Of a stretch of 64,000 nucleotides of DNA, positions 1-63,519 are shown piece by piece. The stretch lies in NCBI GenBank assembly GCA_002269645.1, contig NIVC01001587.1, forward strand, positions 1 through 64,000, written 5' to 3'. The position numbers and the translations under genes are program-made. The stretch's first letter is position 1; every line of letters starts with the position of its first letter. The notes beneath the pieces were generated by a model. That model was not told the origin of the DNA and made no database searches. It saw only the letters and a program-made list of their open reading frames with translations. The DNA is from Macrostomum lignano (lineage: Eukaryota).

Positions 1-3000
1 CTAAGAAGGCGCTGAGCCCAAGCCAACTAGAGAATGTGGAATTCCCCGAGCTGCCGAAGCTGCCCAAGTTTGTGCGCGTCGTGCTGAAGACGCTGCCAGG
101 CAAGGCGACTAGCGTCAGAGCCGAGTTGAAGGCTTGCCACAAGCCGAAGACTACCGTTAGGACGACACAACAGACGACGACCACGACGGGACGCACAACA
201 CCGAGCACGACAAGCAGGAAGCCGGGATCGCCAGCCGCCGAGAAGCTCACCTTCCCGATGCCGTCGATGCCAGGAGCGACAGGAAAGACAACGACAACGC
301 CGGCGCCTACTACAACAACAAGACGCCCGGCCGTGTGCCTGCGCAAGAGCGTGAAACTGTTTGAGAGCGGCGAGCTGCCCAGCGACGCGCTGACCAAGGC
401 GGAGAAGCTCCCAGAGAAGAAGGAGTTCACACCCAAGGAGCGAAAGGAGGCCCTGCTGCCTAGCGGTAGTGGACTGCCAGTGAAGCGAGGCGGTTCCACC
501 CAGCTCACCTTCCAGGTGGACCGTCTGCCAAAGACTGCCAGCCTGATGAAGGTGGTGCTCAAGAGCAGCACGCCGGACAGTGTTCGCGAGGTGACCGTGT
601 TTGTGGCCGACGAGGACAAGCCAGAGAAGTACGTGCAAGTGAACAGGGAGACGCCGAAGGAGCCTAAGAAGGCGCTGAGCCCAAGCCAACTAGAGAATGT
701 GGAATTCCCCGAGCTGCCGAAGCTGCCCAAGTTTGTGCGCGTCGTGCTGAAGACGCTGCCAGGCAAGGCGACTAGCGTCAGAGCCGAGTTGAAGGCTTGC
801 CACAAGCCGAAGACTACCGTTAGGACGACACAACAGACGACGACCACGACGGGACGCACAACACCGAGCACGACAAGCAGGAAGCCGGGATCGCCAGCCG
901 CCGAGAAGCTCACCTTCCCGATGCCGTCGATGCCAGGAGCGACAGGAAAGACAACGACAACGCCGGCGCCTACTACAACAACAAGACGCCCGGCCGTGTG
1001 CCTGCGCAAGAGCGTGAAACTGTTTGAGAGCGGCGAGCTGCCCAGCGACGCGCTGACCAAGGCGGAGAAGCTCCCAGAGAAGAAGGAGTTCACACCCAAG
1101 GAGCGAAAGGAGGCCCTGCTGCCTAGCGGTAGTGGACTGCCAGTGAAGCGAGGCGGTTCCACCCAGCTCACCTTCCAGGTGGACCGTCTGCCAAAGACTG
1201 CCAGCCTGATGAAGGTGGTGCTCAAGAGCAGCACGCCGGACAGTGTTCGCGAGGTGACCGTGTTTGTGGCCGACGAGGACAAGCCAGAGAAGTACGTGCA
1301 AGTGAACAGGGAGACGCCGAAGGAGCCTAAGAAGGCGCTGAGCCCAAGCCAACTAGAGAATGTGGAATTCCCCGAGCTGCCGAAGCTGCCCAAGTTTGTG
1401 CGCGTCGTGCTGAAGACGCTGCCAGGCAAGGCGACTAGCGTCAGAGCCGAGTTGAAGGCTTGCCACAAGCCGAAGACTACCGTTAGGACGACACAACAGA
1501 CGACGACCACGACGGGACGCACAACACCGAGCACGACAAGCAGGAAGCCGGGATCGCCAGCCGCCGAGAAGCTCACCTTCCCGATGCCGTCGATGCCAGG
1601 AGCGACAGGAAAGACAACGACAACGCCGGCGCCTACTACAACAACAAGACGCCCGGCCGTGTGCCTGCGCAAGAGCGTGAAACTGTTTGAGAGCGGCGAG
1701 CTGCCCAGCGACGCGCTGACCAAGGCGGAGAAGCTCCCAGAGAAGAAGGAGTTCACACCCAAGGAGCGAAAGGAGGCCCTGCTGCCTAGCGGTAGTGGAC
1801 TGCCAGTGAAGCGAGGCGGTTCCACCCAGCTCACCTTCCAGGTGGACCGTCTGCCAAAGACTGCCAGCCTGATGAAGGTGGTGCTCAAGAGCAGCACGCC
1901 GGACAGTGTTCGCGAGGTGACCGTGTTTGTGGCCGACGAGGACAAGCCAGAGAAGTACGTGCAAGTGAACAGGGAGACGCCGAAGGAGCCTAAGAAGGCG
2001 CTGAGCCCAAGCCAACTAGAGAATGTGGAATTCCCCGAGCTGCCGAAGCTGCCCAAGTTTGTGCGCGTCGTGCTGAAGACGCTGCCAGGCAAGGCGACTA
2101 GCGTCAGAGCCGAGTTGAAGGCTTGCCACAAGCCGAAGACTACCGTTAGGACGACACAACAGACGACGACCACGACGGGACGCACAACACCGAGCACGAC
2201 AAGCAGGAAGCCGGGATCGCCAGCCGCCGAGAAGCTCACCTTCCCGATGCCGTCGATGCCAGGAGCGACAGGAAAGACAACGACAACGCCGGCGCCTACT
2301 ACAACAACAAGACGCCCGGCCGTGTGCCTGCGCAAGAGCGTGAAACTGTTTGAGAGCGGCGAGCTGCCCAGCGACGCGCTGACCAAGGCGGAGAAGCTCC
2401 CAGAGAAGAAGGAGTTCACACCCAAGGAGCGAAAGGAGGCCCTGCTGCCTAGCGGTAGTGGACTGCCAGTGAAGCGAGGCGGTTCCACCCAGCTCACCTT
2501 CCAGGTGGACCGTCTGCCAAAGACTGCCAGCCTGATGAAGGTGGTGCTCAAGAGCAGCACGCCGGACAGTGTTCGCGAGGTGACCGTGTTTGTGGCCGAC
2601 GAGGACAAGCCAGAGAAGTACGTGCAAGTGAACAGGGAGACGCCGAAGGAGCCTAAGAAGGCGCTGAGCCCAAGCCAACTAGAGAATGTGGAATTCCCCG
2701 AGCTGCCGAAGCTGCCCAAGTTTGTGCGCGTCGTGCTGAAGACGCTGCCAGGCAAGGCGACTAGCGTCAGAGCCGAGTTGAAGGCTTGCCACAAGCCGAA
2801 GACTACCGTTAGGACGACACAACAGACGACGACCACGACGGGACGCACAACACCGAGCACGACAAGCAGGAAGCCGGGATCGCCAGCCGCCGAGAAGCTC
2901 ACCTTCCCGATGCCGTCGATGCCAGGAGCGACAGGAAAGACAACGACAACGCCGGCGCCTACTACAACAACAAGACGCCCGGCCGTGTGCCTGCGCAAGA

Positions 3001-6000
3001 GCGTGAAACTGTTTGAGAGCGGCGAGCTGCCCAGCGACGCGCTGACCAAGGCGGAGAAGCTCCCAGAGAAGAAGGAGTTCACACCCAAGGAGCGAAAGGA
3101 GGCCCTGCTGCCTAGCGGTAGTGGACTGCCAGTGAAGCGAGGCGGTTCCACCCAGCTCACCTTCCAGGTGGACCGTCTGCCAAAGACTGCCAGCCTGATG
3201 AAGGTGGTGCTCAAGAGCAGCACGCCGGACAGTGTTCGCGAGGTGACCGTGTTTGTGGCCGACGAGGACAAGCCAGAGAAGTACGTGCAAGTGAACAGGG
3301 AGACGCCGAAGGAGCCTAAGAAGGCGCTGAGCCCAAGCCAACTAGAGAATGTGGAATTCCCCGAGCTGCCGAAGCTGCCCAAGTTTGTGCGCGTCGTGCT
3401 GAAGACGCTGCCAGGCAAGGCGACTAGCGTCAGAGCCGAGTTGAAGGCTTGCCACAAGCCGAAGACTACCGTTAGGACGACACAACAGACGACGACCACG
3501 ACGGGACGCACAACACCGAGCACGACAAGCAGGAAGCCGGGATCGCCAGCCGCCGAGAAGCTCACCTTCCCGATGCCGTCGATGCCAGGAGCGACAGGAA
3601 AGACAACGACAACGCCGGCGCCTACTACAACAACAAGACGCCCGGCCGTGTGCCTGCGCAAGAGCGTGAAACTGTTTGAGAGCGGCGAGCTGCCCAGCGA
3701 CGCGCTGACCAAGGCGGAGAAGCTCCCAGAGAAGGAGTTCACACCCAAGGAGCGAAAGGAGGCCCTGCTGCCTAGCGGTAGTGGACTGCCAGTGAAGCGA
3801 GGCGGTTCCACCCAGCTCACCTTCCAGGTGGACCGTCTGCCAAAGACTGCCAGCCTGATGAAGGTGGTGCTCAAGAGCAGCACGCCGGACAGTGTTCGCG
3901 AGGTGACCGTGTTTGTGGCCGACGAGGACAAGCCAGAGAAGTACGTGCAAGTGAACAGGGAGACGCCGAAGGAGCCTAAGAAGGCGCTGAGCCCAAGCCA
4001 ACTAGAGAATGTGGAATTCCCCGAGCTGCCGAAGCTGCCCAAGTTTGTGCGCGTCGTGCTGAAGACGCTGCCAGGCAAGGCGACTAGCGTCAGAGCCGAG
4101 TTGAAGGCTTGCCACAAGCCGAAGACTACCGTTAGGACGACACAACAGACGACGACCACGACGGGACGCACAACACCGAGCACGACAAGCAGGAAGCCGG
4201 GATCGCCAGCCGCCGAGAAGCTCACCTTCCCGATGCCGTCGATGCCAGGAGCGACAGGAAAGACAACGACAACGCCGGCGCCTACTACAACAACAAGACG
4301 CCCGGCCGTGTGCCTGCGCAAGAGCGTGAAACTGTTTGAGAGCGGCGAGCTGCCCAGCGACGCGCTGACCAAGGCGGAGAAGCTCCCAGAGAAGAAGGAG
4401 TTCACACCCAAGGAGCGAAAGGAGGCCCTGCTGCCTAGCGGTAGTGGACTGCCAGTGAAGCGAGGCGGTTCCACCCAGCTCACCTTCCAGGTGGACCGTC
4501 TGCCAAAGACTGCCAGCCTGATGAAGGTGGTGCTCAAGAGCAGCACGCCGGACAGTGTTCGCGAGGTGACCGTGTTTGTGGCCGACGAGGACAAGCCAGA
4601 GAAGTACGTGCAAGTGAACAGGGAGACGCCGAAGGAGCCTAAGAAGGCGCTGAGCCCAAGCCAACTAGAGAATGTGGAATTCCCCGAGCTGCCGAAGCTG
4701 CCCAAGTTTGTGCGCGTCGTGCTGAAGACGCTGCCAGGCAAGGCGACTAGCGTCAGAGCCGAGTTGAAGGCTTGCCACAAGCCGAAGACTACCGTTAGGA
4801 CGACACAACAGACGACGACCACGACGGGACGCACAACACCGAGCACGACAAGCAGGAAGCCGGGATCGCCAGCCGCCGAGAAGCTCACCTTCCCGATGCC
4901 GTCGATGCCAGGAGCGACAGGAAAGACAACGACAACGCCGGCGCCTACTACAACAACAAGACGCCCGGCCGTGTGCCTGCGCAAGAGCGTGAAACTGTTT
5001 GAGAGCGGCGAGCTGCCCAGCGACGCGCTGACCAAGGCGGAGAAGCTCCCAGAGAAGAAGGAGTTCACACCCAAGGAGCGAAAGGAGGCCCTGCTGCCTA
5101 GCGGTAGTGGACTGCCAGTGAAGCGAGGCGGTTCCACCCAGCTCACCTTCCAGGTGGACCGTCTGCCAAAGACTGCCAGCCTGATGAAGGTGGTGCTCAA
5201 GAGCAGCACGCCGGACAGTGTTCGCGAGGTGACCGTGTTTGTGGCCGACGAGGACAAGCCAGAGAAGTACGTGCAAGTGAACAGGGAGACGCCGAAGGAG
5301 CCTAAGAAGGCGCTAAGCCCAAGCCAACTAGAGAATGTGGAATTCCCCGAGCTGCCGAAGCTGCCCAAGTTTGTGCGCGTCGTGCTGAAGACGCTGCCAG
5401 GCAAGGCGACTAGCGTCAGAGCCGAGTTGAAGGCTTGCCACAAGCCGAAGACTACCGTTAGGACGACACAACAGACGACGACCACGACGGGACGCACAAC
5501 ACCGAGCACGACAAGCAGGAAGCCGGGATCGCCAGCCGCCGAGAAGCTCACCTTCCCGATGCCGTCGATGCCAGGAGCGACAGGAAAGACAACGACAACG
5601 CCGGCGCCTACTACAACAACAAGACGCCCGGCCGTGTGCCTGCGCAAGAGCGTGAAACTGTTTGAGAGCGGCGAGCTGCCCAGCGACGCGCTGACCAAGG
5701 CGGAGAAGCTCCCAGAGAAGAAGGAGTTCACACCCAAGGAGCGAAAGGAGGCCCTGCTGCCTAGCGGTAGTGGACTGCCAGTGAAGCGAGGCGGTTCCAC
5801 CCAGCTCACCTTCCAGGTGGACCGTCTGCCAAAGACTGCCAGCCTGATGAAGGTGGTGCTCAAGAGCAGCACGCCGGACAGTGTTCGCGAGGTGACCGTG
5901 TTTGTGGCCGACGAGGACAAGCCAGAGAAGTACGTGCAAGTGAACAGGGAGACGCCGAAGGAGCCTAAGAAGGCGCTGAGCCCAAGCCAACTAGAGAATG

Positions 6001-6043
6001 TGGAATTCCCCGAGCTGCCGAAGCTGCCCAAGTTTGTGCGCGT
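1..6043 (+). repeat. Coding tandem repeat, 663-bp unit (221 aa), ~9.1 copies in window
   Basis: Units recur every 663 bp and are near-identical. Variants I saw: a 3-bp deletion near 3731 (one Lys lost) and a synonymous G>A at 5315. The array diverges at 6044. Confidence 0.98.
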
Positions 6044-9000
6044 TATAGTTCAAATTTTGGCTGAGATGTCCACGAATGTCTCTTTGGATCTATTTTCGTG
6101 TCAGGATGATTTTTATCCATGTATGAATTGCACACACAACGGGACTTCGTACATTGAAGGCTCGATTGTATCGCTTAATGGAGTCAAATGTGATCATCAG
6201 TAAGTGTTTAACGCGACTTGTAGTTTTTGGAGTTAAAGTTTTTGTTTATTGTTTGCATATGAATTTCTTCGTTTTTAGTGTGTGCCGGAAACGATCGTGG
6301 GAGCCTCTTTATGACTGCTCGTCATGGAGTTCCTGGTCAAACTGCTCGTCGGAATGCGATGCCGGATTCAAGACTAGGATGAAGATCTGTCGGTCTAGTT
6401 TCCGGGATCTGATTGCAAGGCAAAATCTGACGTCGTTGGAAAAGTGCTTTAACCAGGTCGAGCGAGAACCGTGTTTTAACAGAAGATGCTCTAGTATGTA
6501 TTTTTTGCAATGCTCTTCTTCGTCACTTGAATTTTCGTTAATCTACTGCAATTTTGTTTTTTTTTCAGAAACTGAGTGCAACCCTGCAGAATGGGGTCCC
6601 TGGAGCCCGTGCTCTGGAGAGTGCAGCACTTTGCTTTCAGAGCGGAAGCGGCAGCCGGGCAGCGCTGTGTTGTCAGAATTTTGCAAGAAAGTTCAACTGC
6701 CAGAATCGCGCTGTGCCCGAAAACGGAAAAGTGCCGTAAGTTTAGAATCTGCTTTTTTATTAGTATTTCCTTCTTTGTATACCGAGACGCATTCCATTGT
6801 GCTTTACTATTCTTTATTTAGTCTTGCTCTTTTAAAGTAGGATTTAAATCATTTTCCTCTTTCAGTGTGCAAGGATCCCAATGCAGCGTGGAACAACTGC
6901 TCAAACCAATGTCCTTTCACATGCGGCCACCTCTCCGAGCAATCTGCGTGTGTCATGACCTCTGCCTGCGTGCCTGGGTGCGCGTGCAAGCCAGGCTATT
7001 ACCTGCAGGACGGCCGCTGCGTACCGCAGTCGCAGTGCCGCTGCCCAGGTCTCACACCAACTACATTGGCGATTAGTACAACTGCACTGACGACTCCCAG
7101 TACTGGAGCCGCTGCCGCCTTGTTTGTGTCTTACTCAAGTCCAAAGGCTCGAATTCGCGGAACCGCCGCTCCTGACAAAATCTCAATGCTGATTCCGGAT
7201 CTCAACCTATTGATCCCCGCACTGCCAACTATCGTAGGAGGTGGAGCTTCAAAGCCAGCCGATGGCGCTGACTTGAAATCAACGTCAGTTAGCGTTGGCG
7301 CTAAAACCAATCCGCCTGCGACTTCCAGTTCGCAAGCGCCACGCATCCGGGGCACGGCAGCGCCGGATCGTGCGTCAATGCTCATCCCCATGCTTCCTGG
7401 CAAACCAGCTGCTACCCCTGTGAAGCCGGCTACGACTGCGACAGCACCGACTCCTACAACACCGGTCAGGATTCGAGGCACTGCAGCGCCAGACGGAGTA
7501 AACCTGCTGATCCCTACGCTATCACTGGGCTCAGCTGCTAATACCACAACTATGGCTCCCAGTACAACTGTTCCAACGACAACTGCGGCGGCATCTGTTA
7601 GCACAGTTGCATCCGTGAATGGAATTCCCGCCGCACCTTCTAACGCTGCAACGCCAGGCGCTTTTGCTCCGGGAGTAACGAGCGGGTCGTCAGGCAGCTT
7701 CACAGTGAAGGGCTTTGTTTCTCCGGCTCAAGGACTTGGTAAAGCCAACACAATGGGTGCGTTCCGAGTAACGTCTCTGCTTAACATGAAACGGCCGCCT
7801 CCACCGCCCCCACCGAGGCCCGGAGGCAACCACGGACGGTTCCAACATTCAGCATTCCGACTGCCGCCCAAGTTCCACCTACCTGCACCATCGGGAGGCA
7901 GGCCGGCTTTCAGGCTGCCGGGCCAGTTTAAACCGCCTCCGGCGTTCCGTCCACCCGGCGGTGGCAGCTTTGGAAAGTTTAATCCTGGCAAGCCAGTTTT
8001 CCGCCTGCCTGGAGCTGGCTCTTTCAATCCGCCGGGAAAGCCAGGCACAAAGAATTCGAGTCCGTCTGTGCCTCACACTCCGGCCGCGGCTAGCCCTGCC
8101 CAACCGGTGACTCCTAAGTCATCAGCATCGACCCCGGCTCCCCCACCAGGCCTAAAGCCAGTCCCATCAGGCCAGCAGGCTTCAGTTGCGCCCACTAAAC
8201 CGACTACAAAGGCGCCAGTGCCGATGTCGAGCCAGGGAACCAGAATTCGTGGCACTGCTGCCGACGATCGCGTGGACCTACGAATTCCAACTCTGCCGAA
8301 CTTGCTGCCTCTGCCAACTTCTCCAAGGACTAAGCTGTTTACAAAGCGCTCAACGCCGTCAACTAGATCCATGCCGAGCATTGGTCCCCATACAAGCGCT
8401 ACCGCTAAGCGAAAACTTACTTCGGCCGCTCCAGTCACTAGCAAGCCTCTACGCCCATCTTTCCCGGGTATTCCGCCAGCGGGACCGCACGCGCCGCCCG
8501 GTGGACAAGGTTCCAGCCCGGCAACGCCTAAGAAGCCGACAACAGTTGTGACAACAACATCGATGGGTACTCGAGCAACTAACAGTTGGGTGATGATTGG
8601 TGGCAGCAACTGTACATGCACATCAGGCAAGACCACCTGCGTTGGAGGGCACGAGGGCTCGCTAGCTGCCTGGTCTACGTGGACAGCGTGGTCCAACTGC
8701 AGCGCCCACTGTGGCCAGGGCAAGCAGTACAGGTTCCGCCAGTGTTCTGGCCCAGCCTGCGTTGGAAACGGTCACGCCAATGAGTCCAGAGCTTGCACCG
8801 GAGTGGACTGCTACTGCGTCTTCAGCCGAGCCAAACTACAGTGGCTGCTAACTGATGATTACTATCACGCCGAGATGTGGGTCGAACGTGACGGAAAACC
8901 AGGCCTGAGCAGTCCTCTGGAAACAGTGAACGACGGCGATAGACTCGAAAGCGGCTCGGTGCTGCAGGTCGGCTGCCTTCGTTGCACCTGCAAGGACGGC

Positions 9001-12000
9001 GGATTTGCCTGCAAACTGCAGCGCTGCGCCAGCGACTGTCAATGGAGCGCCTGGCAGCCGTGGGCCACGTGCAGCGCCACCTGCGGAGGCGGCTTGCAGA
9101 CAAGACTACGGACGATTCACAAGCCAGCTGTAGCCAACGGTGCGCCTTGCCAGGCGAGCGGCTTCACGGACACGCAGGCCTGCAACCTGGATCCATGCCC
9201 TGGCTGCTCCTGGTCCAGCTGGTCACAGTGGAGCAACTGCACCGGCAGCGCTACCAGCGACATCGGAGTGCGAGAACGGCGACGCCAGCCGATCGGCAGC
9301 TGCAAAGAAGCCGACCGCGACCTGCAGCCGTGCCAACTGCGCCCGGCACAGTCCAAATGCAAGCCCGGCCAGCTGCACAGCGCCTGTCACAACGTTACAG
9401 GCTGCGAGGTGGCTTGCTCTGCCGGCGCTAACGCTAGGACCCTCTGCTCACAGACTGACGCGTGCCTAAGTGGCTGCCTGTGCCCCAAGGGTCAAGTGAT
9501 GGGCCCCAATGGACAGTGCGTTGCCACTGACAAGTGCAGATGCTTGCCAAAATCAATCAACTGTTCAAACTGGTAAGTTTCGAGGTCAGTCTTGAGTAAT
9601 ACACACTGAAAACTTCTTGCAGAATAGATGAGGGGCAACATCCCGCACGCCTAGACTAGTCAAGGAGCACTAGTAATATATATTCTGGAAGTCCTTGGCT
9701 GTAGTTTTTACAACGTTTTTAGACACTGCACTTCCTAGGAATGGAAATTTTCAGCTCAAAAGCGTTCTCGAACGACATCGGAGTGCGAGAACGACGACGC
9801 CAACTGATCGGCAGCTGCAACGAAGCCGACCTTTTCGACATGTTTTGATTAGTTCTCGGTCCAGAGTTATAAAGTCGCCCTTCTAATCAAACTTTGCCCA
9901 TCCAATCGAGTAGAAAGTATTTTGAATTATCGCAACTTGAACACCAATAAATTCCACTCCGCAGCTTCAAGCCAGTCTGCCTGAACGGCCAGCCGACCTG
10001 CCTGCCGGACATGAACTGCCAGCGTCTCTACACCGAGTGGTCGGCCTGGTCGGCTTGCTCAGCCGCCTGCGGCGAGGGTCTCAGCCACCGAACTCGCCAG
10101 CTGCTGCAGGAGGGCCGCCGGCCAGCCGGCTGCGGCAAGTCGGACCTGATCGAGACGCGCCACTGCAACGCCCGGCCGTGCGGCTACGCTTGCAAAGATC
10201 GGAATGGCGACTTGTACACCGAGGGACAGGCTATGCCGGCGCTGGACCAGTGCTCCATGTGGTGAGCTCAAGCTCTTCATGCATGTACACCCGTGCATCT
10301 CCTACATGCGTGTCTAATAGTGAGATTCGATCTGGCCTGGATCTCAGCATGCAGTTAGATACAGACGTTCGGAATCATATTTAATCAACTACAAGCCTCA
10401 CCCTTTTAATGTCGGTTGGTGACTTTTAATGTCGGTTGGTGACTTTTAATGTCGGTTGGTGACTTTTAATGTCGGTGGTGACTTCTAATGTTGTCAAGCA
10501 TTCCGCAACCTTTATTGCACGCATTATATTGGAGATTACACTATTTATTTTTTAATACTGTACGCGTATGCGTAATTCCAAACTGTTTCTCGCACAGACG
10601 GCATTATTAACATCCTCAACCAACTGCAGCTTCTGCCGCGCCAATCGCACCGAGTGTGTCAGCAAGGCGAAGGTAGGCGAGCCGGTGCCCGCCCCGGTCT
10701 GGTCGGCCTGGTCAACCTGGAGCTCCTGCGTCAGCGCGGCTGCCAACAACCGACGCCAGGAGCGGCGCCGCCGGTGCGTGCGCATCTGTCCAGACGACCC
10801 CAGGAAGTGCGGAGAGTTCTTCGACAAAGAGGAATCGGTCGAATGGAAGGCTTGCCTTCCCAAAACACCGCGTAAGCACTTTGAAATAACAGTGTTGGCA
10901 CGGGTGGGGGTCGCAACTCTCCCATTTCTACCGCAGCTCAGCGCTGCTTCAAGCGTACTAACCGATATCAACTCAGCTTAACTTGCATGTTCTGGCGACC
11001 TCTCTTCTCCCCAGTTCTGAAACGAGACTGCATTGTGTCGCCGGATTGGATCGAGGGCACCTGCTACGCCAACTGCATGGTCCGCTCCGCTGTGGCCAAA
11101 GGATTCCGCACTCTCTACCGGCGAATCCTTCAGCTGCCGGCGAACGGAGGCGCTCCGTGCCCCGAACTGCGCCGCGAAGACGTGCCGTGCACGAAGACCT
11201 GCCCAGTCGACTGCTCGCAGACCGCCTGGTCTGCCTGGGGCGCCTGCGTCCGCGCCTCCAACTCCGGCTGCTCCGGCCTGCAAGTGCGGTCGCGCGGCGT
11301 CTTAGTGCCGCCCGCCAACGGAGGCCGCGCCTGCGAGGACGCCAAGCAGCTTCGGTCCTGTCTGGCGCCCGGCTGCCAGACCAGCGCCTGTCGGGCTCCA
11401 ATGACGAAGCAGCCGCTACAGCAGAGCCGATGCATCGTCCGCTGCTCTGATCTGGCCAGCGAAGACAAGTGCGCGCCAGTCCAGGCTGCCAACGCTGCGG
11501 CCGTCAATGCAACAGCGTGTGCCTGTCCTGCTGGCCAGTACGAACAGGACGGTCGCTGCGTGGCCAAGCAGGCCTGCCGATGCCGCTGGAACGAGGAACT
11601 GATGGGCCAGCGAAGTCCCGGCACCAGGGAGGAGTTCGCAGCCGGGGAGCGGCTTGTCATGGGCTGCAAGAACTGGTGAGCGGCGGTGAACTCTTCTGCA
11701 CTTACTAAATACCCATTGAAGCACATGTACTACTGTTCAAACAACCAATGTACTGACTGCATAGTGGCCTATCCTGCAATCAGAGAATACAGATGATTGT
11801 AAGGTGGCTTAGACCACTGCCACAAATCAAGACGACATGACAGTCGACCCCTGAACACCCCACCCGGATGCGTATGCGGGCTCACACAAGGTGTACAGTA
11901 GGGGGCGTAGCCTAGCGGTCTAACGCAGCGCTCTGATGTTTCAGCGGCCCAGGCTCGATTCCAAGTCCAGTCATAATAATTTGGGGTTAAATTGGAATCT

Positions 12001-15000
12001 CGGCTTGGCTCTGCTCGTGCAATTAACGGCCAGCTTGAGGGCCAACCTCCAAGGCACAGTGAAGTGTATATGCCTAACGATAAATAAAGTCAGGGCCGCT
12101 GTACACTCCTGTGTGAGTGTGTGCCTGTGCGTATGACTGCGTACGTATCCTTGCGCTTGTGTGCCTGCTCAGGGGATGCTCAGTGCATACTACTAGCACA
12201 CAGCCACCCTTCCTCTGCCTCTAATACAGGGTGTACTGCACCCCTGACATTCTTATCGTCAGGAGTGTACACTTTTTGTAGCTTTTGTGGGTTGCCCTTT
12301 ATTGGCCAGAATAGTGCAGAAAACTCTGGGCCAATATTCGTGCACTAAAGCCCCAAGTTGAGTGTGGCTCACTCACGGAATTTAACCCATGGGGTCGTAT
12401 GGCGCGAGGGTCGGACGCGTTTACCGCTGAGCAGCCCCCCACCCATGTAAAGGTGGCTACCTGATTGCTAATTATCGTTACTCTGCCGGTATTTAACAGC
12501 ACCTGCCAGGACGGAGTGTTCAAGTGCAACCGGCTGTCGAGCTGCTCGGACGAGTGCCACTGGTCCAACTGGCGTCCCGAAGGCAAATGCACCGCCGGCT
12601 GCCGGCTCAAGCCGGGCCTGCAGAAGTTTGTGCGCTCGCCGAGAAACTCGGACTACCTGCCGACTAAGGCCTGCCAGGGACCGTCGGTGAAATACGAGCT
12701 GTGCAGCTCAACTCGAAGCTGCGGTAAGTGTGCAAAAAATATGAAACTTTTGCCTAAATGTCAATCTACAAATGAGTACTAAGTCTCTCTAAACTTTCCG
12801 ATCTCTAAGTTGTGTACCGCACAAAATGCAATAAGCATCAGCCCGGTAGCAGACCCTAAATTTCAGCTGCCGTCATCCAGATTCATAAGCCCTAATCTTT
12901 TCAATTCCTAACTGACAACGCCTTGAAAGCTCAATAAAACAGTTAAGGGTTCAGGGGGGTTCTAGCCTAGTGGTTAGAGCGTCGGACTCACGACTTGAAG
13001 GTCGGGGGTTCGATTCCCGATCCCACTAGGAACAATTTGTGTCCTTAAACAAGGCATTTAACTCTGAATTTCTTCAGTTCACTCAGCTGTAAAATGGTTG
13101 CCAGCATTAGCTGGGGTAATTGAGGGTGCGTGGCGACCCCCCCCCCCAGTCCTTGGACTGAACAGCCGTACGCAGCCTTCAGATGCGCCGCGCAATAGCT
13201 GCGGCTGAGCTGTGGGTTGCACATCTGCCGATTGGGGCAAATGTAATCAAATACGATTTTTTATGGTTATTATTAATTAGTTTATATAACGCTAAGGCGC
13301 TGGGAAGTGTTGCCTCACAGGCGTCGCCCTTCATCCTCACTTCCCCTTCCCGTCCATCCAGACTCGCTGTGCCCCAGCGGACAGCGCTACAACGAATTTG
13401 GCGAGTGCGATGAGCAGTGCTACTCAGCGGGCAGCCTCGGACAGCCGCAGCGTCAGCGCTGCCCAGAGCAGGCCTGCGTCTGCGCGCGCGGTCTGGTGAA
13501 ACGTGGCGACTCGTGCGTGCCCAAATCCGAGTGCTACAAGTGCTCCAGCGGCAATACTACTCTGCCGGTGAGTAGTTAAGTGGTACACGTGTAGGATTTT
13601 AATAATTTTGCTTTCGGAAGTTTGACCCGCTGCTTATATATACTACTAGGAATATCAGCATGTAGCCTATAGGCCAAGCGTCATTCAGAACAAACAATTC
13701 ATTCGCATTTTTCATTTAAACAGGACGGCGGCTACTCCGTGGACTTGGCAGCCTGCCAGATTGTCACCTGCGACAAGGGCAGAACAAGCGCTGTGCCGCT
13801 CAGCGTCGACCAGATGCCGGCCTGCAGTCTGGAGGACGAACGGATCGCCCAGTCAGCGCCAGTAAGCACCTGTTTAGCTGCTTTTCTGCTCGCGTGAATG
13901 TTGCAGTCTGGCTTAGGAGGCAAGTCTTAGTCTCACTCAGGGTGGTACAGTCTCACTCAGGGAGGCACGGTCTCACTCAGGGAGGTACAGTCTCACTCAG
14001 GGAGGTACAGTCTCACTCAGGGTGGTACAGTCTCACTCAGGGAGGTACAGTCTCACTCAGGGTGGTACAGTCTCACTCAGGGAGGCACAGTCTCACTCAG
14101 GGAGGCACAGTCTCACTCAGGGTGGTACAGTCTCACTCAGGGAGGCACAGTCTCACTCAGGGAGGCACAGTCTCACTCAGGGTGGTACAGTCTCACTCAG
14201 GGTGGTACAGTCTCACTCAGGGAGGCACGGTCTCACTCAGGGTGGTACAGTCTCACTCAGGGTGGTACAGTCTCACTCAGGGAGGTACAATCTCACTCAG
14301 AGAGGTACAATCTCACTCAGGGAGGCAGGTCTCACTCAGGGTGGTACAGTCTCACTCAGGGAGTACAATCTCATTCAGGGAGGTACAATCTCACTCAGGG
14401 AGGTACAATTTCACTCAGGGAGGTACAGTCTCACTCAGGGAGGTACAATCTCACTCAGAGAGGTACAATCTCACTCAGAGAGGTACAATCTCATTCAGGG
14501 AGGTACAATCTCACTCAGAGAGGTACAATCTCACTCAGAGAGGTACAATCTCACTCAGGGAGGTACAATCTCATTCAGGGAGGTACAATCTCACTCAGGG
14601 AGGTACAATTTCACTCAGGGAGGTACAGTCTCACTCAGGGAGGTACAATCTCACTCAGAGAGGTACAATCTCACTCAGGGAGGCACAGTCTCACTCAATG
14701 AGGCAGGGTTCCGAGATTTTGTCGATGGTCAAAACCATCCTCATATGTGACACTTTATCACAAAATGTTAGTAATGTGCACTCCATATGCCCAAACAGAA
14801 AGTAGCATAGTATGCATAGAATCTATTTAATGCAACACCACCGTTCGCACCGCCAGAAGGCGAAGGACCCCAACCGCTGCTGCTACCGGGCTTCGGCTTC
14901 CGCCTGCTCGCGCGAGGAGGTGTCAATCTCGAAGTTGGACGACTCCTGCCTGCTGACTTCGCCAATCCGGGTGCCGCACTGCCGCGGCCAGTGTCCGCAG

Positions 15001-20359: not shown

Positions 20360-31574
<11,215 letters not shown>

Positions 31575-40240: not shown

Positions 40241-43200
40241 ATGGCTACCTCCGGTGCGAGTGGGGATGCTGGTGCCAGCGGATCCGGGTAATTTGCTGTT
40301 AGGCATTTTATTTTTATCGATTTATTTTGCCTTTTAGAAGCAGTCTGTTGCATTATTGAACCAATTTCAAATTTTAGATCTGGGCCTAGCTATCAACCAA
40401 ATAAAGGCTGCAACAGACTCAAGCTCAAGTTGATGAGGCAAGTGGTTAATACTCATATTGTATTAGACTGTTAGAGTTAGTAATTGTTCTTTAGGTACAG
40501 CTTCACGCCTTCCACCTCCCCGCCAGGTTGTCGGCATTATGCGCGTCAATGTTGAAAAAGTGATGCAACGCGATGAAAAGATTTCTGACTTGAATGAGCG
40601 AGCTGGTAAGTGGCTAATTTACACTTTCAAAACCTACCGCTGTGTTCCTACCGTTATGTCTTCTCTATGCAATTTTGTTATTACCCTATTTATGATAAAC
40701 ATTGGCGCTAACCTTCACTTACTTTCGCACTACTGGAAGAATATCTTTGGCCCTGTTAATCAATGTTGTCTTTTTCATTTTAATTAGCTGTTTCTTTATT
40801 TGTGTTGTCTTTGCTAATTATTGCGTACCTGCTGTTAACTAGGCCACCCCCTACTTATAGTAGTTTGCAGCTTAAACAGAATCAATCAATGACCAGAAAG
40901 CATCAGTGAGATTCCTCATCTCATCCTGTACCAGAAGGAATAAGTGAGATTCCTCATCTCATTCTGTACCGGAAGGAATTAGTGAGATTCCTCATCTCAT
41001 TCTGTACCGGAAGGAATTAGTGAGATTCCTCATCTCATTCTGTACCAGAAGGAATTAGTGAGATTCCTCATCTCATTCTGTACCGGAAGGAATTAGTGAG
41101 ATTCCTCATCTCATTCTGTACCAGAAGGAATTAGTGAGATTCCTCATCTCATTCTGTACCAGAAGGAATTAGTGAGATTCCTCATCTCATTCTGTACCGG
41201 AAGGAATTAGTGAGATTCCTCATCTCATTCTGTACCAGAAGGAATTAGTGAGATTCCTCATCTCATTCTGTACCAGAAGGAATTTCTGAGATTCCTCATC
41301 TCATCCTGTACCAGAATGGATGAGTCGGTGAGATTTCTCATTTCATCCTGTACCAGAATCAGTGAGATTTCTCATCCTGTCCAAGGCAAAACGAATGCCC
41401 CTTGTCATTTGCACCAAGACTATAATATGTACCAAGACTAAACCTCGCTTACCGGCTGCACCGCACGCCTCAGACGCCCTTCAGGCTGGCGCCTCCCGCT
41501 TTGAAGCCAGCGCCGGCCGTCTAAAACGAAAGTATTGGTGGCAAAACACCAAGGTACTGTGCTGCGAGTTGCCCGGCATGACTTTGAGTCGCTAATGCTG
41601 ATTTAAGAGAGTAGAGAGTTAAATGATTGGCTGGGTTTTTGCGATTTTTTTAAACTACCAATTTATAAATTTTATCCGATCAACTGATTAAATGAGAATC
41701 ATTGTTGACTTCCAACCTGCTTGATTATTCTTGGCTAACACCCTCCTAGATCTTCGAAAATCCGAATTCTTCAGCATCTTAAATTAGAATAAGCAGCCAA
41801 CATCTCATCTCCTCAGTTGCTGGGCCAGCCTCCCGGATCCTCAGTTGCTGGTCCAGCCTCCCAGGATCCTCAGTTGCTGGTCCAGTCTCCCAGATCCTCA
41901 GTTGCTGGTCAGTCTCCCAGATCGTCAGTTGCTGGACCATCCTCTCAGATCCTCAGGTGCTGGTCCATCCTCTCAGATCCTCAGTTGCTGGGCCAGCCTC
42001 CCAGAACCTCAGTTGCTGGTCTAGCCTCCCGGATCCTCAGTTGCTGGTCCAGTCTCCCAGATCCTCAGTTGCTGGGCCAGCCTCGCAGATCCTCAGTTGC
42101 TGGTCCAGTCTCCCAGATCCTCAGTTGCTGGGCCAGCCTCGCAGATCCTCAGTTGCTGGTCCAGCCTCCCAGATCCTCAGTTGCTGGTCCAGCCTCCCAG
42201 GATCCTCAGTTGCTGGTCCAGTCTCCCAGATCCTCAGTTGCTGGTCCAGTCTCCCAGATCGTCAGTTGCTGGGCCAACCTCCCGGATCCTCAGTTGCTGG
42301 TCCAGCCTCCCAGATCCTCAGTTGCTGGTCCAGCCTCCCAGATCCTCAGTTGCTGGTCCAGCCTCCCAGGATCCTCAGTTGCTGGTCCAGTCTCCCAGAT
42401 CCTCAGTTGCTGGTCCAGTCTCCCAGATCGTCAGTTGCTGGGCCAACCTCCCGGATCCTCAGTTGCTGGTCCAGCCTCCCAGATCCTCAGTTGCTGGTCC
42501 AGCCTCCCAGGATCCTCAGTTGCTGGTCCAGTCTCCCAGATCCTCAGTTGCTGGTCCAGTCTCCCAGATCGTCAGTTGCTGGACCATCCTCTCAGATCCT
42601 CAGGTGCTGGTCCATCCTCTCAGATCCTCAGTTGCTGGGCCAGCCTCCCAGAACCTCAGTTGCTGGTCTAGCCTCCCGGATCCTCAGTTGCTGGTCCAGT
42701 CTCCCAGATCCTCAGTTGCTGGGCCAGCCTCGCAGATCCTCAGTTGCTGGTCCAGTCTCCCAGATCCTCAGTTGCTGGGCCAGCCTCGCAGATCCTCAGT
42801 TGCTGGGCCGCCCTTCAGATCCCCAGATTGAGCAACCAACATCGCAGATCCTAAACAGTAGTTAATTCTGTCCTATAATCGAGAAATTGTGTATGATGCA
42901 GCCTTGCAGTACATTGCTTTGCTTCGATTGATTGCATTTTATCAACCATTTATACCTGCAATTAGCATGCTCACTGAACAAACCAATATCAATGGTTATT
43001 CAGCATAAAGTTCTACACTGATTTGCATTGCATTTTGCCACTAACAGACACTCTGCGCATTGGGACGCAACAATTTTCTAATGTTGCCACCAAAATGAAA
43101 CGAAAATACTGCTGGCAGAATGCCAAGGTTGCTCAATGCTTTTTATATACATATAACATGCTTTTGAGTTTTGCTAGTAAAAATTAAGACCAAATTGTGT

Positions 43201-46200
43201 GCTGGGTTATCTTGACAGTAATTACTCGAAAAGTAACTCATCTAACCTTGCGTATATCAATGCACTCGTGCTTCTCAAAAATTGTAACCAGGAATTTTTT
43301 ATTTAACTTTTATCTGTACCCCGGCGCATATATTTTATGTATGACCTGAATTGTCACGGGAAGTTAACACCAGCTAAAGCCCTACAAAATGTAAAAAAGC
43401 ATTGCAGTTATTTTTCACTCTGAAGATTTCACAAAATACAGAAATTTTCTGTTTAGATTGCGTGGGCTGCCAGCCTCCCAGATCCTCAGTTGCTGGGCCA
43501 GTCTCCCGGATCCTCAGTTGCTGGTCCAGTCTCCCAGATCCTCAGTTGCTGGGCCAGCCTCCCAGATCCTCAGTTGCTGGGCCAGCCTCCCAGATCCTCA
43601 GTTGCTGGGCCAGCCTCCCAGATCCTCAGTTGCTGGGCCAGCCTCTCAGATCCTCAGTTGCTGGTCCAGCCTCTCAGATCCTCAGTTACTGGGCCAGCCT
43701 CCCAGATCCTCAGTTGCTGGTCCAGCCTTCCAGATCCTCAGTTGCTGGGCCAGCCTCCCAGATCCTCAGTTACTGGGCCAGCCTCTCAGATCCTCAGTTG
43801 CTGGGCCAGCCTCTCAGATCCTCAGTTGCTGGGCCAGCCTTCCAGATCCTCAGTTGCTGGGCCAGCCTCCCAGATCCTCAGTTGCTGGGCCAGCCTCTCA
43901 GATCCTCAGTTGCTGGGCCAGCCTTCCAGATCCTCAGTTGCTGGGCCAGCCTCCCAGATCCTCAGTTGCTGGGCCAGCCTCCCAGATCCTCAGTTGCTGG
44001 GCCAGCCTCCCAGATCCTCAGTTGCTGGGCCAGCCTCCCAGATCCCCAGTTGCTGGGCCAGCCTCCCAGATCCTCAGTTGCTGGGCCAGCCTCCCAGATC
44101 CCCAGTTGCTGGGCCAGCCTCCCAGATCCTCAGTTGCTGGTCCAGCCTTCCAGATCCTCAGTTGCTGGGCCAGCCTCTCAGATCCCCAGTTGCTGGGCCA
44201 GCCCTCCAGGTCCTCAGTTGCTGGGCCAGCCTCTCAGATCCCCAGTTGCTGGGCCAGCCTCTCAGATCCTCAGTTGCTGGGCCAGCCTCTCAGATCCCCA
44301 GTTGCTGGGCCAGCCTCTCAGATCCTCAGTTGCTGGGCCAGCCTCCCAGATCCTCAGTTGCTGGGCCAGCCTCTCAGATCCCCAGTTGCTGGGCCAGCCT
44401 CTCAGATCCTCAGTTGCTGGGCCAGCCTTCCAGATCCTCAGTTGCTGGGCCAGCCTCCCAGATCCTCAGTTACTGGGCCAGCCTCTCAGATCCTCAGTTG
44501 CTGGGCCAGCCTTCCAGATCCTCAGTTGCTGGGCCAGCCTCCCAGATCCTCAGTTACTGGGCCAGCCTCTCAGATCCTCAGTTGCTGGGCCAGCCTTCCA
44601 GATCCTCAGTTGCTGGGCCAGCCTCTCAGATCCTCAGTTGCTGGGCCACCCTCTCAGATCCTCAGTTACTGGGCCAGCCTCCCAGATCCTCAGTTGCTGG
44701 TCCAGCCTTCCAGATCCTCAGTTGCTGGGCCAGCCTCCCAGATCCTCAGTTACTGGGCCAGCCTCTCAGATCCTCAGTTGCTGGGCCAGCCTCTCAGATC
44801 CTCAGTTGCTGGGCCAGCCTTCCAGATCCTCAGTTGCTGGGCCAGCCTCCCTGATCCTCAGTTGCTGGGCCAGCCTCTCAGATCCTCAGTTGCTGGGCCA
44901 GCCTTCCAGATCCTCAGTTGCTGGGCCAGCCTCTCAGATCCTCAGTTGCTGGGCCAGCCTCCCAAATCCTCAGTTGCTGGGCCAGCCTCCCAGATCCTCA
45001 GTTGCTGGGCCAGCCTCCCAGATCCCCAGTTGCTGGGCCAGCCTCCCAGATCCTCAGTTGCTGGGCCAGCCTTCCAGATCCTCAGTTGCTGGGCCAGCCT
45101 CCCAGATCCTCAGTTACTGGGCCAGCCTCTCAGATCCTCAGTTGCTGGGCCAGCCTTCCAGATCCTCAGTTGCTGGGCCAGCCTCCCAGATCCTCAGTTA
45201 CTGGGCCAGCCTCTCAGATCCTCAGTTGCTGGGCCAGCCTTCCAGATCCTCAGTTGCTGGGCCAGCCTCTCAGATCCTCAGTTGCTGGGCCACCCTCTCA
45301 GATCCTCAGTTACTGGGCCAGCCTCCCAGATCCTCAGTTGCTGGTCCAGCCTCCCAGATCCTCAGTTGCTGGTCCAGCCTCCCAGATCCTCAGTTGCTGG
45401 TCCAGCCTCATGGATCCTCAGTTGCTGGTCCAGCCTCCCAGATCCTCAGTTGCTGGTCTAGCCTCCCGGATCCTCAGTTGCTGGTCCAGTCTCCCAGATC
45501 CTCAGTTGCTGGTCCAGCCTCTCAAATCCTCAGTTGCTGGTCCAGCCTCCCAGATCGTCAGTTGCTGGGCCGGCCACCCTCTCAGATTCTCAGTTGCTGG
45601 TCCAGCCTCTCAAATCCTCAGTCGGTGGACCACCCTCCCAGATCCTCAGTTGCTGGGACGCCCTCCCAAATCCTTAGTTGCTGGGTCAGCCTCCCAGATC
45701 TCCAGTTACTGGGCCAGCCTCTCAGATCCTCAGTTGCTGGGCCAGCCTTCCAGATCCTCAGTTGCTGGGCCAGCCTCCCAGTTCCTCAGTTGCTGGGCCA
45801 GCCTCTCAGATCCTCAGTTGCTGGGCCACCCTCCCAGTTCCTCAGTTGCTGGGCCAGCCTCCCAGTTCCTCAGTTGCTGGGCCAGCCTCCCAGATCCTTA
45901 GTTGCTGGGCCAGCCTCCCAAATCCTCAGTTGCTGGGCCAGTCTCCCAGATCCTCAGTTGCTGGGCCAGCCTCCCAGATCCTCAGTTGCTGGGCCAGCCT
46001 CCCAGATCCTCAGTTGCTGGGCCAGTCTCCCAGATCCTCAGTTGCTGGGCCAGCCTCCCAGATCCTCAGTTGCTGGGCCAGTCTCCCAGATCCTCAGTTG
46101 CTGGGCCAGCCTCCCAGATCCTCAGTTGCTGGGCCAGTCTCCCAGATCCTCAGTTGCTGGGCCAGCCTCCCAGATCCTGATGCACCTGTAAAAAAGCTTT

Positions 46201-48060: not shown

Positions 48061-59046
<10,986 letters not shown>

Positions 59047-63377: not shown

Positions 63378-63519
63378 CTGCGGCGTGAGAGATTATCATA
63401 TTTATCATATGTAACAATAATTCATAGAGCCTAACATTTCTCAAAATCGGGATATCCCGTCAATTCACTGTCGACTATCTAGGCTAGGATTTGGGCTAGG
63501 GTCGGCAGTCACTGACTGA

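Follow-up and report, generated by a model that had tools for sequence, protein, structure and literature searches.

We found that the 221-amino acid repeat (RP-2) of the flatworm adhesive protein Mlig-ap2 is probably built of a very divergent discoidin-like module of 155 residues, with the galactose-binding-domain fold, and a mucin-like linker. This reading draws on structure prediction and on sequence comparison.

The repeat array and its gene

The DNA analyzed here (the window) is a stretch of 64,000 nucleotides from Macrostomum lignano, and it contains the last nine RP-2 units of Mlig-ap2. The gene at this locus is the 3' part of Mlig-ap2, as its translation matches the published epitope and repeat length. 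The antibody epitope VNRETPKEPKKALS has been reported to occur 26 times in Mlig-ap2 and the 221-amino acid sequence to be repeated 25 times; in the translated window, the epitope is present in every unit. Mlig-ap2 is the surface-contacting, PNA-reactive glycoprotein of the M. lignano glue, and its knock-down abolishes attachment. The N-terminus of the protein has vWD/C8/TIL domains. Two types of repeat, RP-1 (255 amino acids, 21 units, outside the window) and RP-2, make up nearly three quarters of it and have been flagged in the field as needing attention. In the literature on Mlig-ap2 they are called "repeats of unknown function" with no domain assigned, as the earlier note had stated.

That note had divided the unit into a 155-residue Cys-to-Cys block and a 66-residue Thr/Pro-rich linker, and the translation and Cys coordinates showed this division to be exact. 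In the first complete unit, positions 336-338 and 798-800 are both TGC (Cys), in the frame of a long + strand open reading frame. The block that they bound (336-800) is exactly 155 amino acids long, starting with CLRKSVKLFESGELPSDALT and ending with PKFVRVVLKTLPGKATSVRAELKAC. These are the only two Cys of the unit, one at each end of the block. The 66-amino acid linker after the block (HKPKTT...TTTTRRPAV) is 34.8% Thr and 15.2% Pro, with a net charge of +9 and a pI of 12. Its first copy is at 138-335, preceded by the C-terminal 45 codons of a block that is cut by the window edge (1-137, ...KFVRVVLKTLPGKATSVRAELKAC; placed by frame 3 translation and Cys positions). Eight further copies of the same linker are at 801-998, 1464-1661, 2127-2324, 2790-2987, 3453-3650, 4113-4310, 4776-4973 and 5439-5636. 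All of these features, and the blocks between them, are on the + strand.

The array is a true tandem repeat, and a chance pattern is ruled out. There are nine Cys-to-Cys blocks. Copy 1 (336-800) is identical to copies 2 to 5 (999-1463, 1662-2126, 2325-2789 and 2988-3452) and to copy 7 (4311-4775); copy 8 (4974-5438) has one mismatch per 663-bp unit. Excluding the units at 3651 and 5637, each unit compared has 0-1 nucleotide differences to unit 1 over 663 bp. Copy 6 (3651-4112) has 154 amino acids, with a 3-bp deletion of one Lys codon in the long loop (PEKEF versus PEKKEF). The last block (5637-6101) is degenerate: its two C-terminal strands have diverged, ending in KFVRVIVQILAEMSTNVSLDLFSC as the earlier note described, and both Cys are retained. 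An antisense open reading frame of 220 amino acids also accompanies each unit; we dismissed these as a by-product of the repeat.

Past the array, on the same strand, the repeat exon has a Cys-rich tail (6102-6198, QDDFYPCMNCTHNGTSYIEGSIVSLNGVKCDH); the GT donor comes next, at 6199, and protein P0001 confirms the splice. Two short exons within 6278-6734 (about 6278-6491 and 6568-6734, with an intron of about 75 nucleotides between them) encode thrombospondin type 1 repeats (TSP1), based on tblastn of P0001, Pfam matches to TSP_1 and TSP1_spondin, and splice-site sequences. A large 3' coding stretch (6865-9576) encodes a TIL domain first, then a region rich in Pro and Thr that carries four RIRGTAAPD...LIP motifs, and after it TSP1 repeats and a second TIL-like end. 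A further TSP1-encoding open reading frame on the + strand (10987-11679) is probably an exon of ap2 that lies further 3'.

Predicted fold of the block

We predicted structures with AlphaFold2 (AF2) for two constructs, both from single sequences: the block (model 1) and a linker-block-linker construct (model 2). Model 1 is all-beta with nine strands (pLDDT 64, pTM 0.63; the five models span pLDDT 32 to 64), and residues 19-45 of the block are below pLDDT 50. Model 2 has a mean pLDDT of 50, with the block at about 60-74 and the strands in the same order as in model 1. Together the two models have 8-9 strands, predicted with moderate confidence, and both Cys sit in the predicted terminal strands. 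The linkers in model 2 had pLDDT <50 and no secondary structure, so they are predicted to be disordered. These predictions fit the beads on a string pictured previously, with a folded all-beta bead and a disordered Thr/Pro linker.

We compared both models to structures in the PDB using Foldseek. The top matches were all galactose-binding-domain-like jelly rolls: IFT25 (E 2e-4, TM 0.44-0.54), CBM29, APC10, CBM32 (TMq 0.50), CBM16, HSPB11, Eph LBD, MAM, and the Bacteroides F5/8C domain 3nng. With model 1, six matches had E<=1e-3 and probability 1.00. All of the significant matches were galactose-binding-domain-like, as were nearly all of the best 50 PDB matches to this moderate-confidence model. 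No structure of FV, FVIII, DDR or neuropilin was among these best 50. Human IFT25 homologue matches the discoidin family (F5/8 type C, PF00754) in Pfam. Within the moderate confidence of the models, then, the structural neighbors of the block are those of the galactose-binding domain-like superfamily (clan GBD / SCOP b.18). The structural check that the earlier note had proposed thus returned galactose-binding-domain-like matches, IFT25 and structures deposited as CBM32 and F5/8 type C (3nng) among them, but the TM-scores against known structures were only 0.35-0.54.

Sequence comparison with discoidin domains

Family and database searches did not join the block to discoidin. Pfam hmmscan (E<=10) gave zero families, whether for the block, a whole unit or the last unit, or for fragments from M. 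pusillum (Mpus), M. spirale (Mspi) and M. tuba (Mtub). The curated threshold for membership in PF00754 is 28.2 bits; five classical discoidin controls scored 80-117 bits (E 1e-22 to 1e-34), and by this family HMM the block is not a member. The profile comparison with PF00754 that had been suggested was negative, with an hhalign probability of 0.4% (P=0.13) and 0 Pfam matches. In local mode, hhalign aligned only 27 C-terminal columns of the block to discoidin, which was not significant (14/300 column shuffles reached the score). Among PDB sequences, a profile hmmsearch found nothing and phmmer found only noise (CED-2, E 0.3). A word-indexed search of 5.8 billion proteins with the block and the Macrostomum profile returned only two M. 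lignano fragments. An exhaustive phmmer search of 1.84 billion representatives returned M. lignano ap2 fragments and two bacterial repeat proteins (P0005 and P0006), which we rejected as spurious multi-repeat matches to query residues 46-98 only. A deep alignment could not be built because only M. lignano fragments exist in these libraries of 5.8 and 1.8 billion proteins.

We made a discoidin profile from the sequences of six diverse classical seeds, five validated by Pfam and FVIII C2 by its matches to FVIII and PF00754. A search with FVIII C2 for a broader profile returned almost exclusively FVIII orthologues. The consensus of the six aligned domains (CSxPLGMESGxIxDxQITASS ... RFVRxxPxxWxxxIALRxELLGC) agrees with the one quoted in the earlier note. 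A local HMM of our own from these six seeds (filters off) gave the block 1.8 bits (p=0.012; 8/2000 shuffles reached the score), and such nominal p-values are optimistic since the discoidin hypothesis arose by visual inspection.

We found that the colinear similarity of the block to metazoan discoidin exceeds chance, with the caveats that discoidin was picked by visual inspection and that the orthologue fragments score lower. An end-anchored global profile alignment of the block with the six classical domains gave z 4.3-5.0. This score was not reached by column shuffles (0/2000 and 0/1000) or by end-fixed block-8 shuffles (0/1000). With unanchored controls, cyclic shifts never reached it (0/154), block shuffles did so in 0-3/2000 cases, and the reversed order scored far lower. 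For 68 real-sequence decoys the mean z was 0.0 (sd 0.9, maximum 2.0), and for eight unrelated beta proteins z was -1.3 to 2.0. The N-domain of galactose oxidase, a true remote member of PF00754, had z 5.0-6.4 in the same test, and the degenerate last block (5637-6101) had z 5.2. Against single templates, the Macrostomum profile gave z 4.7 with NRP1 b1, 4.3 with RS1 and 3.4 with FV C2; all non-discoidin templates had z<=1.3. Values for the non-metazoan PF00754 members were 0.5 (galactose oxidase) and 1.0 (Dictyostelium discoidin I).

Orthologue fragments gave z 3.4 (Mspi), 1.6 (Mtub), 0.9 (M. hystrix, Mhtx) and 0.6 (Mpus) in the global test. Because the signal is weaker in these fragments, luck may account for some of the M. 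lignano score. Wherever the fragments from M. pusillum, M. spirale, M. tuba and M. hystrix cover them, both Cys, D62 and E151 are conserved. Across Macrostomum species the hydrophobic strands are conserved and the loops variable.

In the global alignment, FESGELPSDALT is paired with MESGxIxDxQIT, FQVD with LQVD, VREVTVFVADED with YVKSYxIxYSxDG, KFVRV with RFVRx, and VRAELKAC with LRxELLGC. The five motifs are colinear overall, and the predicted strands coincide exactly with the segments paired to discoidin motifs. The block retains 9 of the 21 columns that are invariant in the six classical domains (C1, L5, D60, N113, P127, R134, R147, E149 and C153). Both core Trp, TQG, G6 (of PLG), G112 (of GN; the Asn is kept), P137 and R36/L37 are missing, so the block lacks the conserved core residues of a discoidin domain. 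Its size and terminal Cys are those of the family (about 150-160 residues, Cys at each end). The discoidin-like block of the earlier note is partly supported, by the predicted fold and by colinear similarity, but not by the family HMM, hhalign or core residues.

The composition of the block is 14% Lys, 10% Glu and 10% Pro, with no Trp and one Tyr. Seventeen of its 23 Lys and 15 of its 17 Pro are outside the predicted strands, and the equivalents of the discoidin "spike" loops are rich in Lys, Pro and Glu and have no aromatics. The whole 221-amino acid unit has a net charge of +18 and a pI of 10.

A divergent discoidin-like module is the reading we prefer. The block could also be a galactose-binding-domain-like jelly roll from another branch of the superfamily, or a convergent one, with the discoidin motif matches reflecting properties common to the fold (a strand ahead of an Asp turn, and a penultimate strand of basic-hydrophobic character). 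We consider this rather unlikely. It would explain why the Foldseek matches are scattered over CBM29, CBM16, APC10, Eph LBD, MAM, CBM6 and Cry domain III with the classical discoidin structures missing from the best 50, why neither Pfam nor hhalign connects the block to PF00754, and why the Macrostomum profile scores so low with galactose oxidase (z 0.5) and Dictyostelium discoidin I (z 1.0). However, it is metazoan discoidin specifically that shows the global similarity (z 3.4-4.7), which is absent for IFT25 and APC10. In addition, the length (155 versus about 153 amino acids) and the terminal Cys pair are the discoidin arrangement, and five motifs are in colinear register.

It is unlikely that the block has no relation to discoidin and is instead a beta-rich or partly disordered segment specific to this lineage, whose Cys cross-link molecules or units as in mucin polymerization. 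The fold and the score would then be artefacts of strand periodicity and by-eye resemblance. Yet two independent constructs agree in strand order and class of neighbor (Foldseek probability 1.00), and block shuffles that preserve periodicity, cyclic shifts and reversal (almost) never match the observed score. Real-sequence decoys reach z of at most 2.0, and the strands are hydrophobic and conserved between species while the loops vary. Several results nonetheless fit an unrelated segment: every standard homology tool was negative, about a quarter of its residues have a pLDDT under 50 (with models from 32 to 64 and a mean of 50 for the second construct), the content of Lys (14%), Glu (10%) and Pro (10%) with no Trp is odd for a globular domain, the orthologue fragments score weakly, and a hypothesis made by inspection has optimistic nominal p-values. 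We regard as very improbable a repeat that works mainly as a low-complexity polycation of amyloid-like or coacervating type, where adhesion comes from the bulk Lys-rich glycopolymer and a folded domain is irrelevant. A review has proposed amyloid-like behavior for repetitive Lys/Arg-rich flatworm adhesive proteins, and the charge (+18) and pI (10) of the unit suit the idea, but the Lys/Arg-rich repeats in that literature belong to Mlig-ap1, not ap2. Moreover, the block is not of low complexity and has alternating hydrophobic strands, a pTM of 0.63, and conserved terminal Cys.

A proposed model for RP-2 in the glue

Based on the divergent discoidin-like reading, we suggest that the block would be a compact beta sandwich of eight to nine strands, closest in sequence order to metazoan discoidin domains, in which the first and last residues, both Cys, probably pair as an N-to-C disulfide as in classical discoidin domains. 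This stripped, strongly diverged fold would have retained the hydrophobic strands and the C-terminal (K/R)-[FY]-V-R ... R-x-E-L-x-x-C signature. It would have lost the aromatic core (both Trp, TQG) and swapped the ligand-binding "spike" loops for long flexible loops rich in Lys, Pro and Glu. The 66-amino acid linker would be a cationic Thr/Pro mucin-like spacer, intrinsically extended, and the likely carrier of PNA-reactive Gal-beta1-3-GalNAc O-glycans. Its composition (27 Ser+Thr among 66 residues) and predicted disorder fit a mucin-type spacer. PNA, a Gal-beta1-3-GalNAc lectin, pulls down Mlig-ap2, glycosylation being published at the level of the whole protein. About 25 RP-2 beads and 21 RP-1 units could serve as rigid scaffolds that together display hundreds of lysines in their loops, and stiff glycosylated spacers would keep these scaffolds apart. 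The result would be multivalent attachment to negatively charged wet surfaces, mainly by electrostatic interactions and hydrogen bonding. We infer the homology to discoidin, the Cys-Cys disulfide, the placement of the glycans and the loop ligands; the block may also bind sugar, collagen or lipid.

RP-2 beads might even be true discoidin domains that have diverged to an extreme degree and yet retain binding. Besides the substrate, their loops would bind T-antigen O-glycans on neighboring linkers, so that the glue self-cross-links by lectin-glycan contacts. Surface binding by discoidin would then be a principle common to the temporary adhesives of flatworms and of echinoderms (Nectin, Sfp1-type proteins), through a spondin/mucin-like ancestor or by convergence. 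We think this decidedly unlikely.

The block resembles the discoidin domains (PF00754, SMART FA58C) of neuropilin-1 b1, retinoschisin and factor V C2 in its length of about 150-160 amino acids, terminal Cys, predicted jelly roll, and colinear ESG-x-[IL], QVD, [YV]-x-[VI]...[SA]-x-D-[GE] strand, [KR]-[FY]-V-R and R-x-E-L-x-x-C. In contrast to these domains, it fails the family HMM (0 hits, versus 80-117 bits for controls) and lacks the Trp pair, TQG, the Gly of GN, and PLG. Its first long segment and "spike" loops are Lys/Glu/Pro-rich and probably flexible, and it has no aromatic platform for sugar or membrane. The minimal PF00754 members IFT25/HSPB11 and CBM32 are the closest structural neighbors of the model (E 2e-4 to 8e-4, TM up to 0.54), but they have no detectable sequence similarity to the block (global z 0.1-1.6), lack the terminal Cys pair, and come from intracellular or bacterial contexts. 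Sea urchin Nectin and the discoidin-containing footprint proteins of sea stars are, like ap2, secreted, glycosylated proteins of temporary adhesives with tandem modules of discoidin type, a type that is predicted in the case of ap2. However, Nectin is acidic and has six canonical FA58C domains directly adjacent to each other. The unit of ap2, by contrast, is basic with a pI of 10, and its modules are separated by 66-amino acid mucin-like linkers and not recognized by Pfam.

Gel-forming mucins (MUC2/MUC5AC/MUC5B type) have ends of vWD-C8-TIL type, and small folded CysD beads break up their Pro/Thr/Ser domains. Like them, ap2 is a giant secreted glycoprotein with a vWD/C8/TIL N-terminus, in which O-glycosylatable Thr/Pro stretches alternate with small Cys-containing modules that are predicted to fold. 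The ap2 bead differs in having 2 Cys and a predicted jelly roll, compared with 10 Cys in mucin CysD. In addition, the C-terminus of ap2 is TSP1/TIL rather than the vWC/CTCK of mucins, and the ap2 units are near-identical 663-bp copies. A mucus-protein origin was discussed for a KR-rich flatworm adhesive protein in the Minona paper.

The analysis provides a structural hypothesis for the surface-binding part of the glue, previously a repeat without an assigned domain. In the best-studied model system for reversible adhesion under water, Mlig-ap2 is the protein that touches the substrate. The fold assignment makes an anonymous stretch of 5,500 residues a defined, potentially expressible domain of 155 residues, with a predicted disulfide, Lys-rich loops, and a separate spacer as putative glycan carrier. 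Recombinant single units could be made, mutated and measured on surfaces, the step that the design of biomimetic glues requires. If the assignment is true, it would connect adhesion in flatworms with the adhesive proteins of sea urchins and sea stars that contain discoidin domains, and would show how far the discoidin scaffold can drift, with both core tryptophans lost yet the order of strands kept.

Repeat anatomy and gene structure of ap2

We found a single open frame (frame 3, plus strand, 1-6203) of head-to-tail 663-bp units. Translation and Cys positions confirmed in every detail the earlier note's description of a 155-aa Cys-to-Cys block followed by a 66-aa Thr/Pro-rich linker (35% Thr, 15% Pro). 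Each 221-aa unit has only two Cys, the first and last residues of the block, which begins CLRKSVKLFESGELPSDALT and ends PKFVRVVLKTLPGKATSVRAELKAC; 336-800 is exactly one block. Nine complete blocks start at 336, 999, 1662, 2325, 2988, 3651, 4311, 4974 and 5637 (plus strand). At 3651, a 3-bp deletion removes a Lys codon from the unit. The final unit (5637-6101, plus) is indeed degenerate, as had been noticed, with its own Cys-terminated C-terminus, KFVRVIVQILAEMSTNVSLDLFSC. Six units, excluding those at 3651 and 5637, had 0-1 mismatch per 663 bp relative to the first unit. Because they are so close, their sequences would imply very recent amplification or homogenisation, or assembly collapse. 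An antisense ORF of 203-220 aa with a TTG start is present in every unit (27-5990, minus; 27..689, 690..1352, etc.). We rejected these ORFs as genes; they recur with the unit and look like a by-product of codon bias.

Every unit in the window contains the peptide VNRETPKEPKKALS, the epitope ("26x") of the anti-Mlig-ap2 antibody AP2_R3 (PMC6410801). The M. lignano adhesive protein Mlig-ap2 has 14,794 aa: 21 repeats of 255 aa (RP-1), then 25 of 221 aa (RP-2), then TSP1 repeats (Wunderer et al., PMC6410801). This architecture fits the database relatives, which are M. lignano fragments (one UniRef-named) with the last unit spliced to TSP1 repeats. RP-1 is located outside the window. On the plus strand, the repeat exon is followed by a GT donor (6199) and TSP1 exons (~6278-6491 and ~6568-6734). 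Next come an extended coding segment (6865-9576), in which TIL, a Pro-rich region and TSP1 are encoded, and another TSP1 ORF (10987-11679). The introns (6199-6864) are very short (~75-130 nt), with canonical GT...AG ends. In the UniRef protein P0002, ...LPKLPKF runs straight into the TSP1 exon, suggesting that a splice within the last unit is alternative or was mis-predicted. Two other database fragments, P0003 and P0004, have many frameshifted stretches (e.g., TTDDTTDDDHDGTHNTEHDKQEAGIASRREAHLPDA, the linker in another frame), indicating that the repeat was misassembled or its gene models are wrong. The motif RIRGTAAPD...(L/M)LIP occurs four times (7150, 7342, 7468 and 8242, plus) in the Pro/Thr-rich region between TIL and TSP1. 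The same motif is present, as IRIRGTAAPDSINILIPKLP, in the M. pusillum ap2-3' sequence (literature supplement), and so has been conserved between distant Macrostomum species.

The region from 13900 to 64000 is packed with minisatellites: units of 20 bp (x38, 13929-14697), 32 bp (x40, 22561-23816), 55 bp (x21, 27007-28160) and 28 bp (x155, 41810-46178), (AACT)n (x244, 57766-58743), and a 17-bp unit (x28, 63515-64000) that runs off the window end. Long ORFs there are translated minisatellite repeats. Two non-repeat minus-strand ORFs, neither with a Pfam match, may be exons of neighbouring genes: one of 352 aa with poly-Gln, poly-His and poly-Ala runs (29009-30067) and one of 219 aa (62651-63310).

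Predicted fold of the block and its possible relation to discoidin domains

The earlier note had proposed that the block is a discoidin (F5/8 type C, FA58C, PF00754) bead on a Thr-rich string. By the family's own criteria, it is not a recognisable member. Pfam hmmscan at E<=10 matched neither the block nor the unit nor the last unit; in the same run RS1, MFGE8 C2, DDR1, NRP1 b1 and FV C2 matched PF00754 with E 1e-22 to 1e-34. No match to the block was found among all PDB sequences with phmmer and a six-row profile. Exhaustive phmmer of 1.84 billion representatives returned only M. lignano ap2 and two bacterial repeat proteins, which we rejected as spurious. With hhalign, the Macrostomum block profile (A1) and a profile of six classical discoidin domains (A2) aligned only over the last 27 columns (PKFVRV...ELKAC with RYLRI...EVLGC), with a probability of 0.4% and P=0.13, a score reached by 14/300 column shuffles. 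The profile similarity that had been anticipated did not appear with standard tools.

The structural prediction held in part. Both AlphaFold2 models were single-sequence. The block alone (327-809) was modelled with nine strands (mean pLDDT 64, pTM 0.63) and one long low-confidence loop (model residues 22-48). In the linker-block-linker model (138-998) the strands followed in an identical order, and the C-terminal two thirds of the block had pLDDT 60-74. Each linker was below pLDDT 50 and lacked secondary structure. Top Foldseek matches in the PDB for both models were galactose-binding-domain-like jelly rolls, among them IFT25 (E 2e-4; TM 0.44-0.54), a PF00754 member in Pfam; CBM32 (TMq 0.50); a Bacteroides "F5/8 type C domain"; and CBM29, APC10, CBM16, HSPB11, Eph ligand-binding domains, MAM and CBM6. 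Since the two lists agree, the predicted fold class is reproducible, but TM-scores were modest, and the top 50 matches contained no structure of factor V/VIII, DDR or neuropilin.

Because the similarity is diffuse and extends along the entire block, we used end-anchored global profile-profile alignment to A2 (BLOSUM62, affine gaps). The terminal Cys were held fixed in end-anchored shuffles (column and block-8) and so made no contribution to z there. The block or A1 scored z 4.3-5.0 against column shuffles (0/2000 at the observed score), a nominal significance that is optimistic because the discoidin hypothesis was picked by eye. End-fixed block-8 shuffles gave z ~4.5 (0/1000). The observed score was reached by 0-3/2000 unanchored block shuffles and 0/154 cyclic shifts, and reversed order scored far lower. 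A remote true member, the galactose oxidase N-domain, had z 5.0-6.4, and Dictyostelium discoidin I 11-15. IFT25 and APC10 gave ~1-1.6, eight unrelated beta proteins -1.3 to 2.0, and 68 real 155-aa decoy windows a mean of 0.02 (sd 0.88, max 1.98). Tested the other way round, the Macrostomum profile gave z 4.7 with NRP1 b1, 4.3 with RS1, 3.4 with FV C2 and 2.5 with DDR1, and <=1.3 with every non-discoidin template. A local HMM of the six seeds, with filters off, gave 1.8 bits (p=0.012; reached by 8/2000 shuffles). Of the 18 control and seed sequences, 13 were Pfam-checked and FVIII C2 was checked via FVIII/PF00754 matches; the remaining four were the controls TTR, streptavidin, cyclophilin A and FABP4.

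The motifs named in the earlier note were paired in this alignment, and the predicted strands lie on the paired segments. Of 21 invariant discoidin columns, nine are kept (C1, L5, D60, N113, P127, R134, R147, E149 and C153). The proposed colinearity was supported in score and pairing, but both Trp and TQG are missing, as are the Gly of GN (G112), G6 and P137, and orthologue fragments scored lower (M. spirale 3.4, M. tuba 1.6, M. hystrix 0.9, M. pusillum 0.6). The aromatic core signature and canonical loop chemistry are lost. Taking the best explanation and its first rival together, the block is very probably a compact galactose-binding-domain-like beta sandwich. We lean, with less assurance, toward a very diverged discoidin domain, based on strand order, length, the terminal Cys pair and the C-terminal signature.

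Loops, linkers and known adhesives

Outside the predicted strands are 17 of the 23 Lys and 15 of the 17 Pro, concentrated in loops of 31 and 16 residues. The 16-residue loop holds most of the AP2_R3 epitope, and the antibody labels ap2 in glands and footprints (PMC6410801). The unit has a net charge of +18 and pI 10. In composition, the linker is a mucin-type PTS segment, and disorder is predicted for it. PNA pull-down showed, for the whole protein, that Mlig-ap2 bears Gal-beta1-3-GalNAc (PMC6410801). The linker (801-998) is not uniformly PTS; it has an island, TSRKPGSPAAEKLTFPMPSMPG, partly conserved in M. hystrix as TSRKAGTPAADTVTSVPG. Spacer length varies widely between Macrostomum species, as the M. 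pusillum linker is just 25 aa. We suggest that rigid beads, spaced by putatively glycosylated linkers, would attach multivalently through lysines. Canonical sugar, collagen or lipid binding by the block is less likely, given the loss of the aromatic residues.

Discoidin/FA58C domains are closest to the block in fold and register. Gel-forming mucins are among the closest known kinds for their vWD/C8/TIL ends and for PTS regions interrupted by compact, folded Cys domains. A mucus-protein origin has been discussed for a KR-rich flatworm adhesive protein (Minona paper). Another close parallel is the tandem discoidin modules in the temporary adhesives of sea urchins (Nectin) and sea stars (footprint proteins); the sea-urchin study lists discoidin among domains recurrent in such adhesives and assigns none to the ap2 repeats. 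As the earlier note stated, the flatworm adhesion literature (including PMC6410801) gives these repeats no function or domain. The word "discoidin" is absent from the flatworm papers that we consulted, and our literature search found no published fold assignment for the repeats. Unlike discoidin domains, the Nectin and footprint proteins, and mucins, the ap2 unit is invisible to family HMMs, is basic rather than acidic, and has long PTS linkers and near-identical amplified copies. Computational evidence of moderate strength suggests that it is a new, highly divergent form of a known module.
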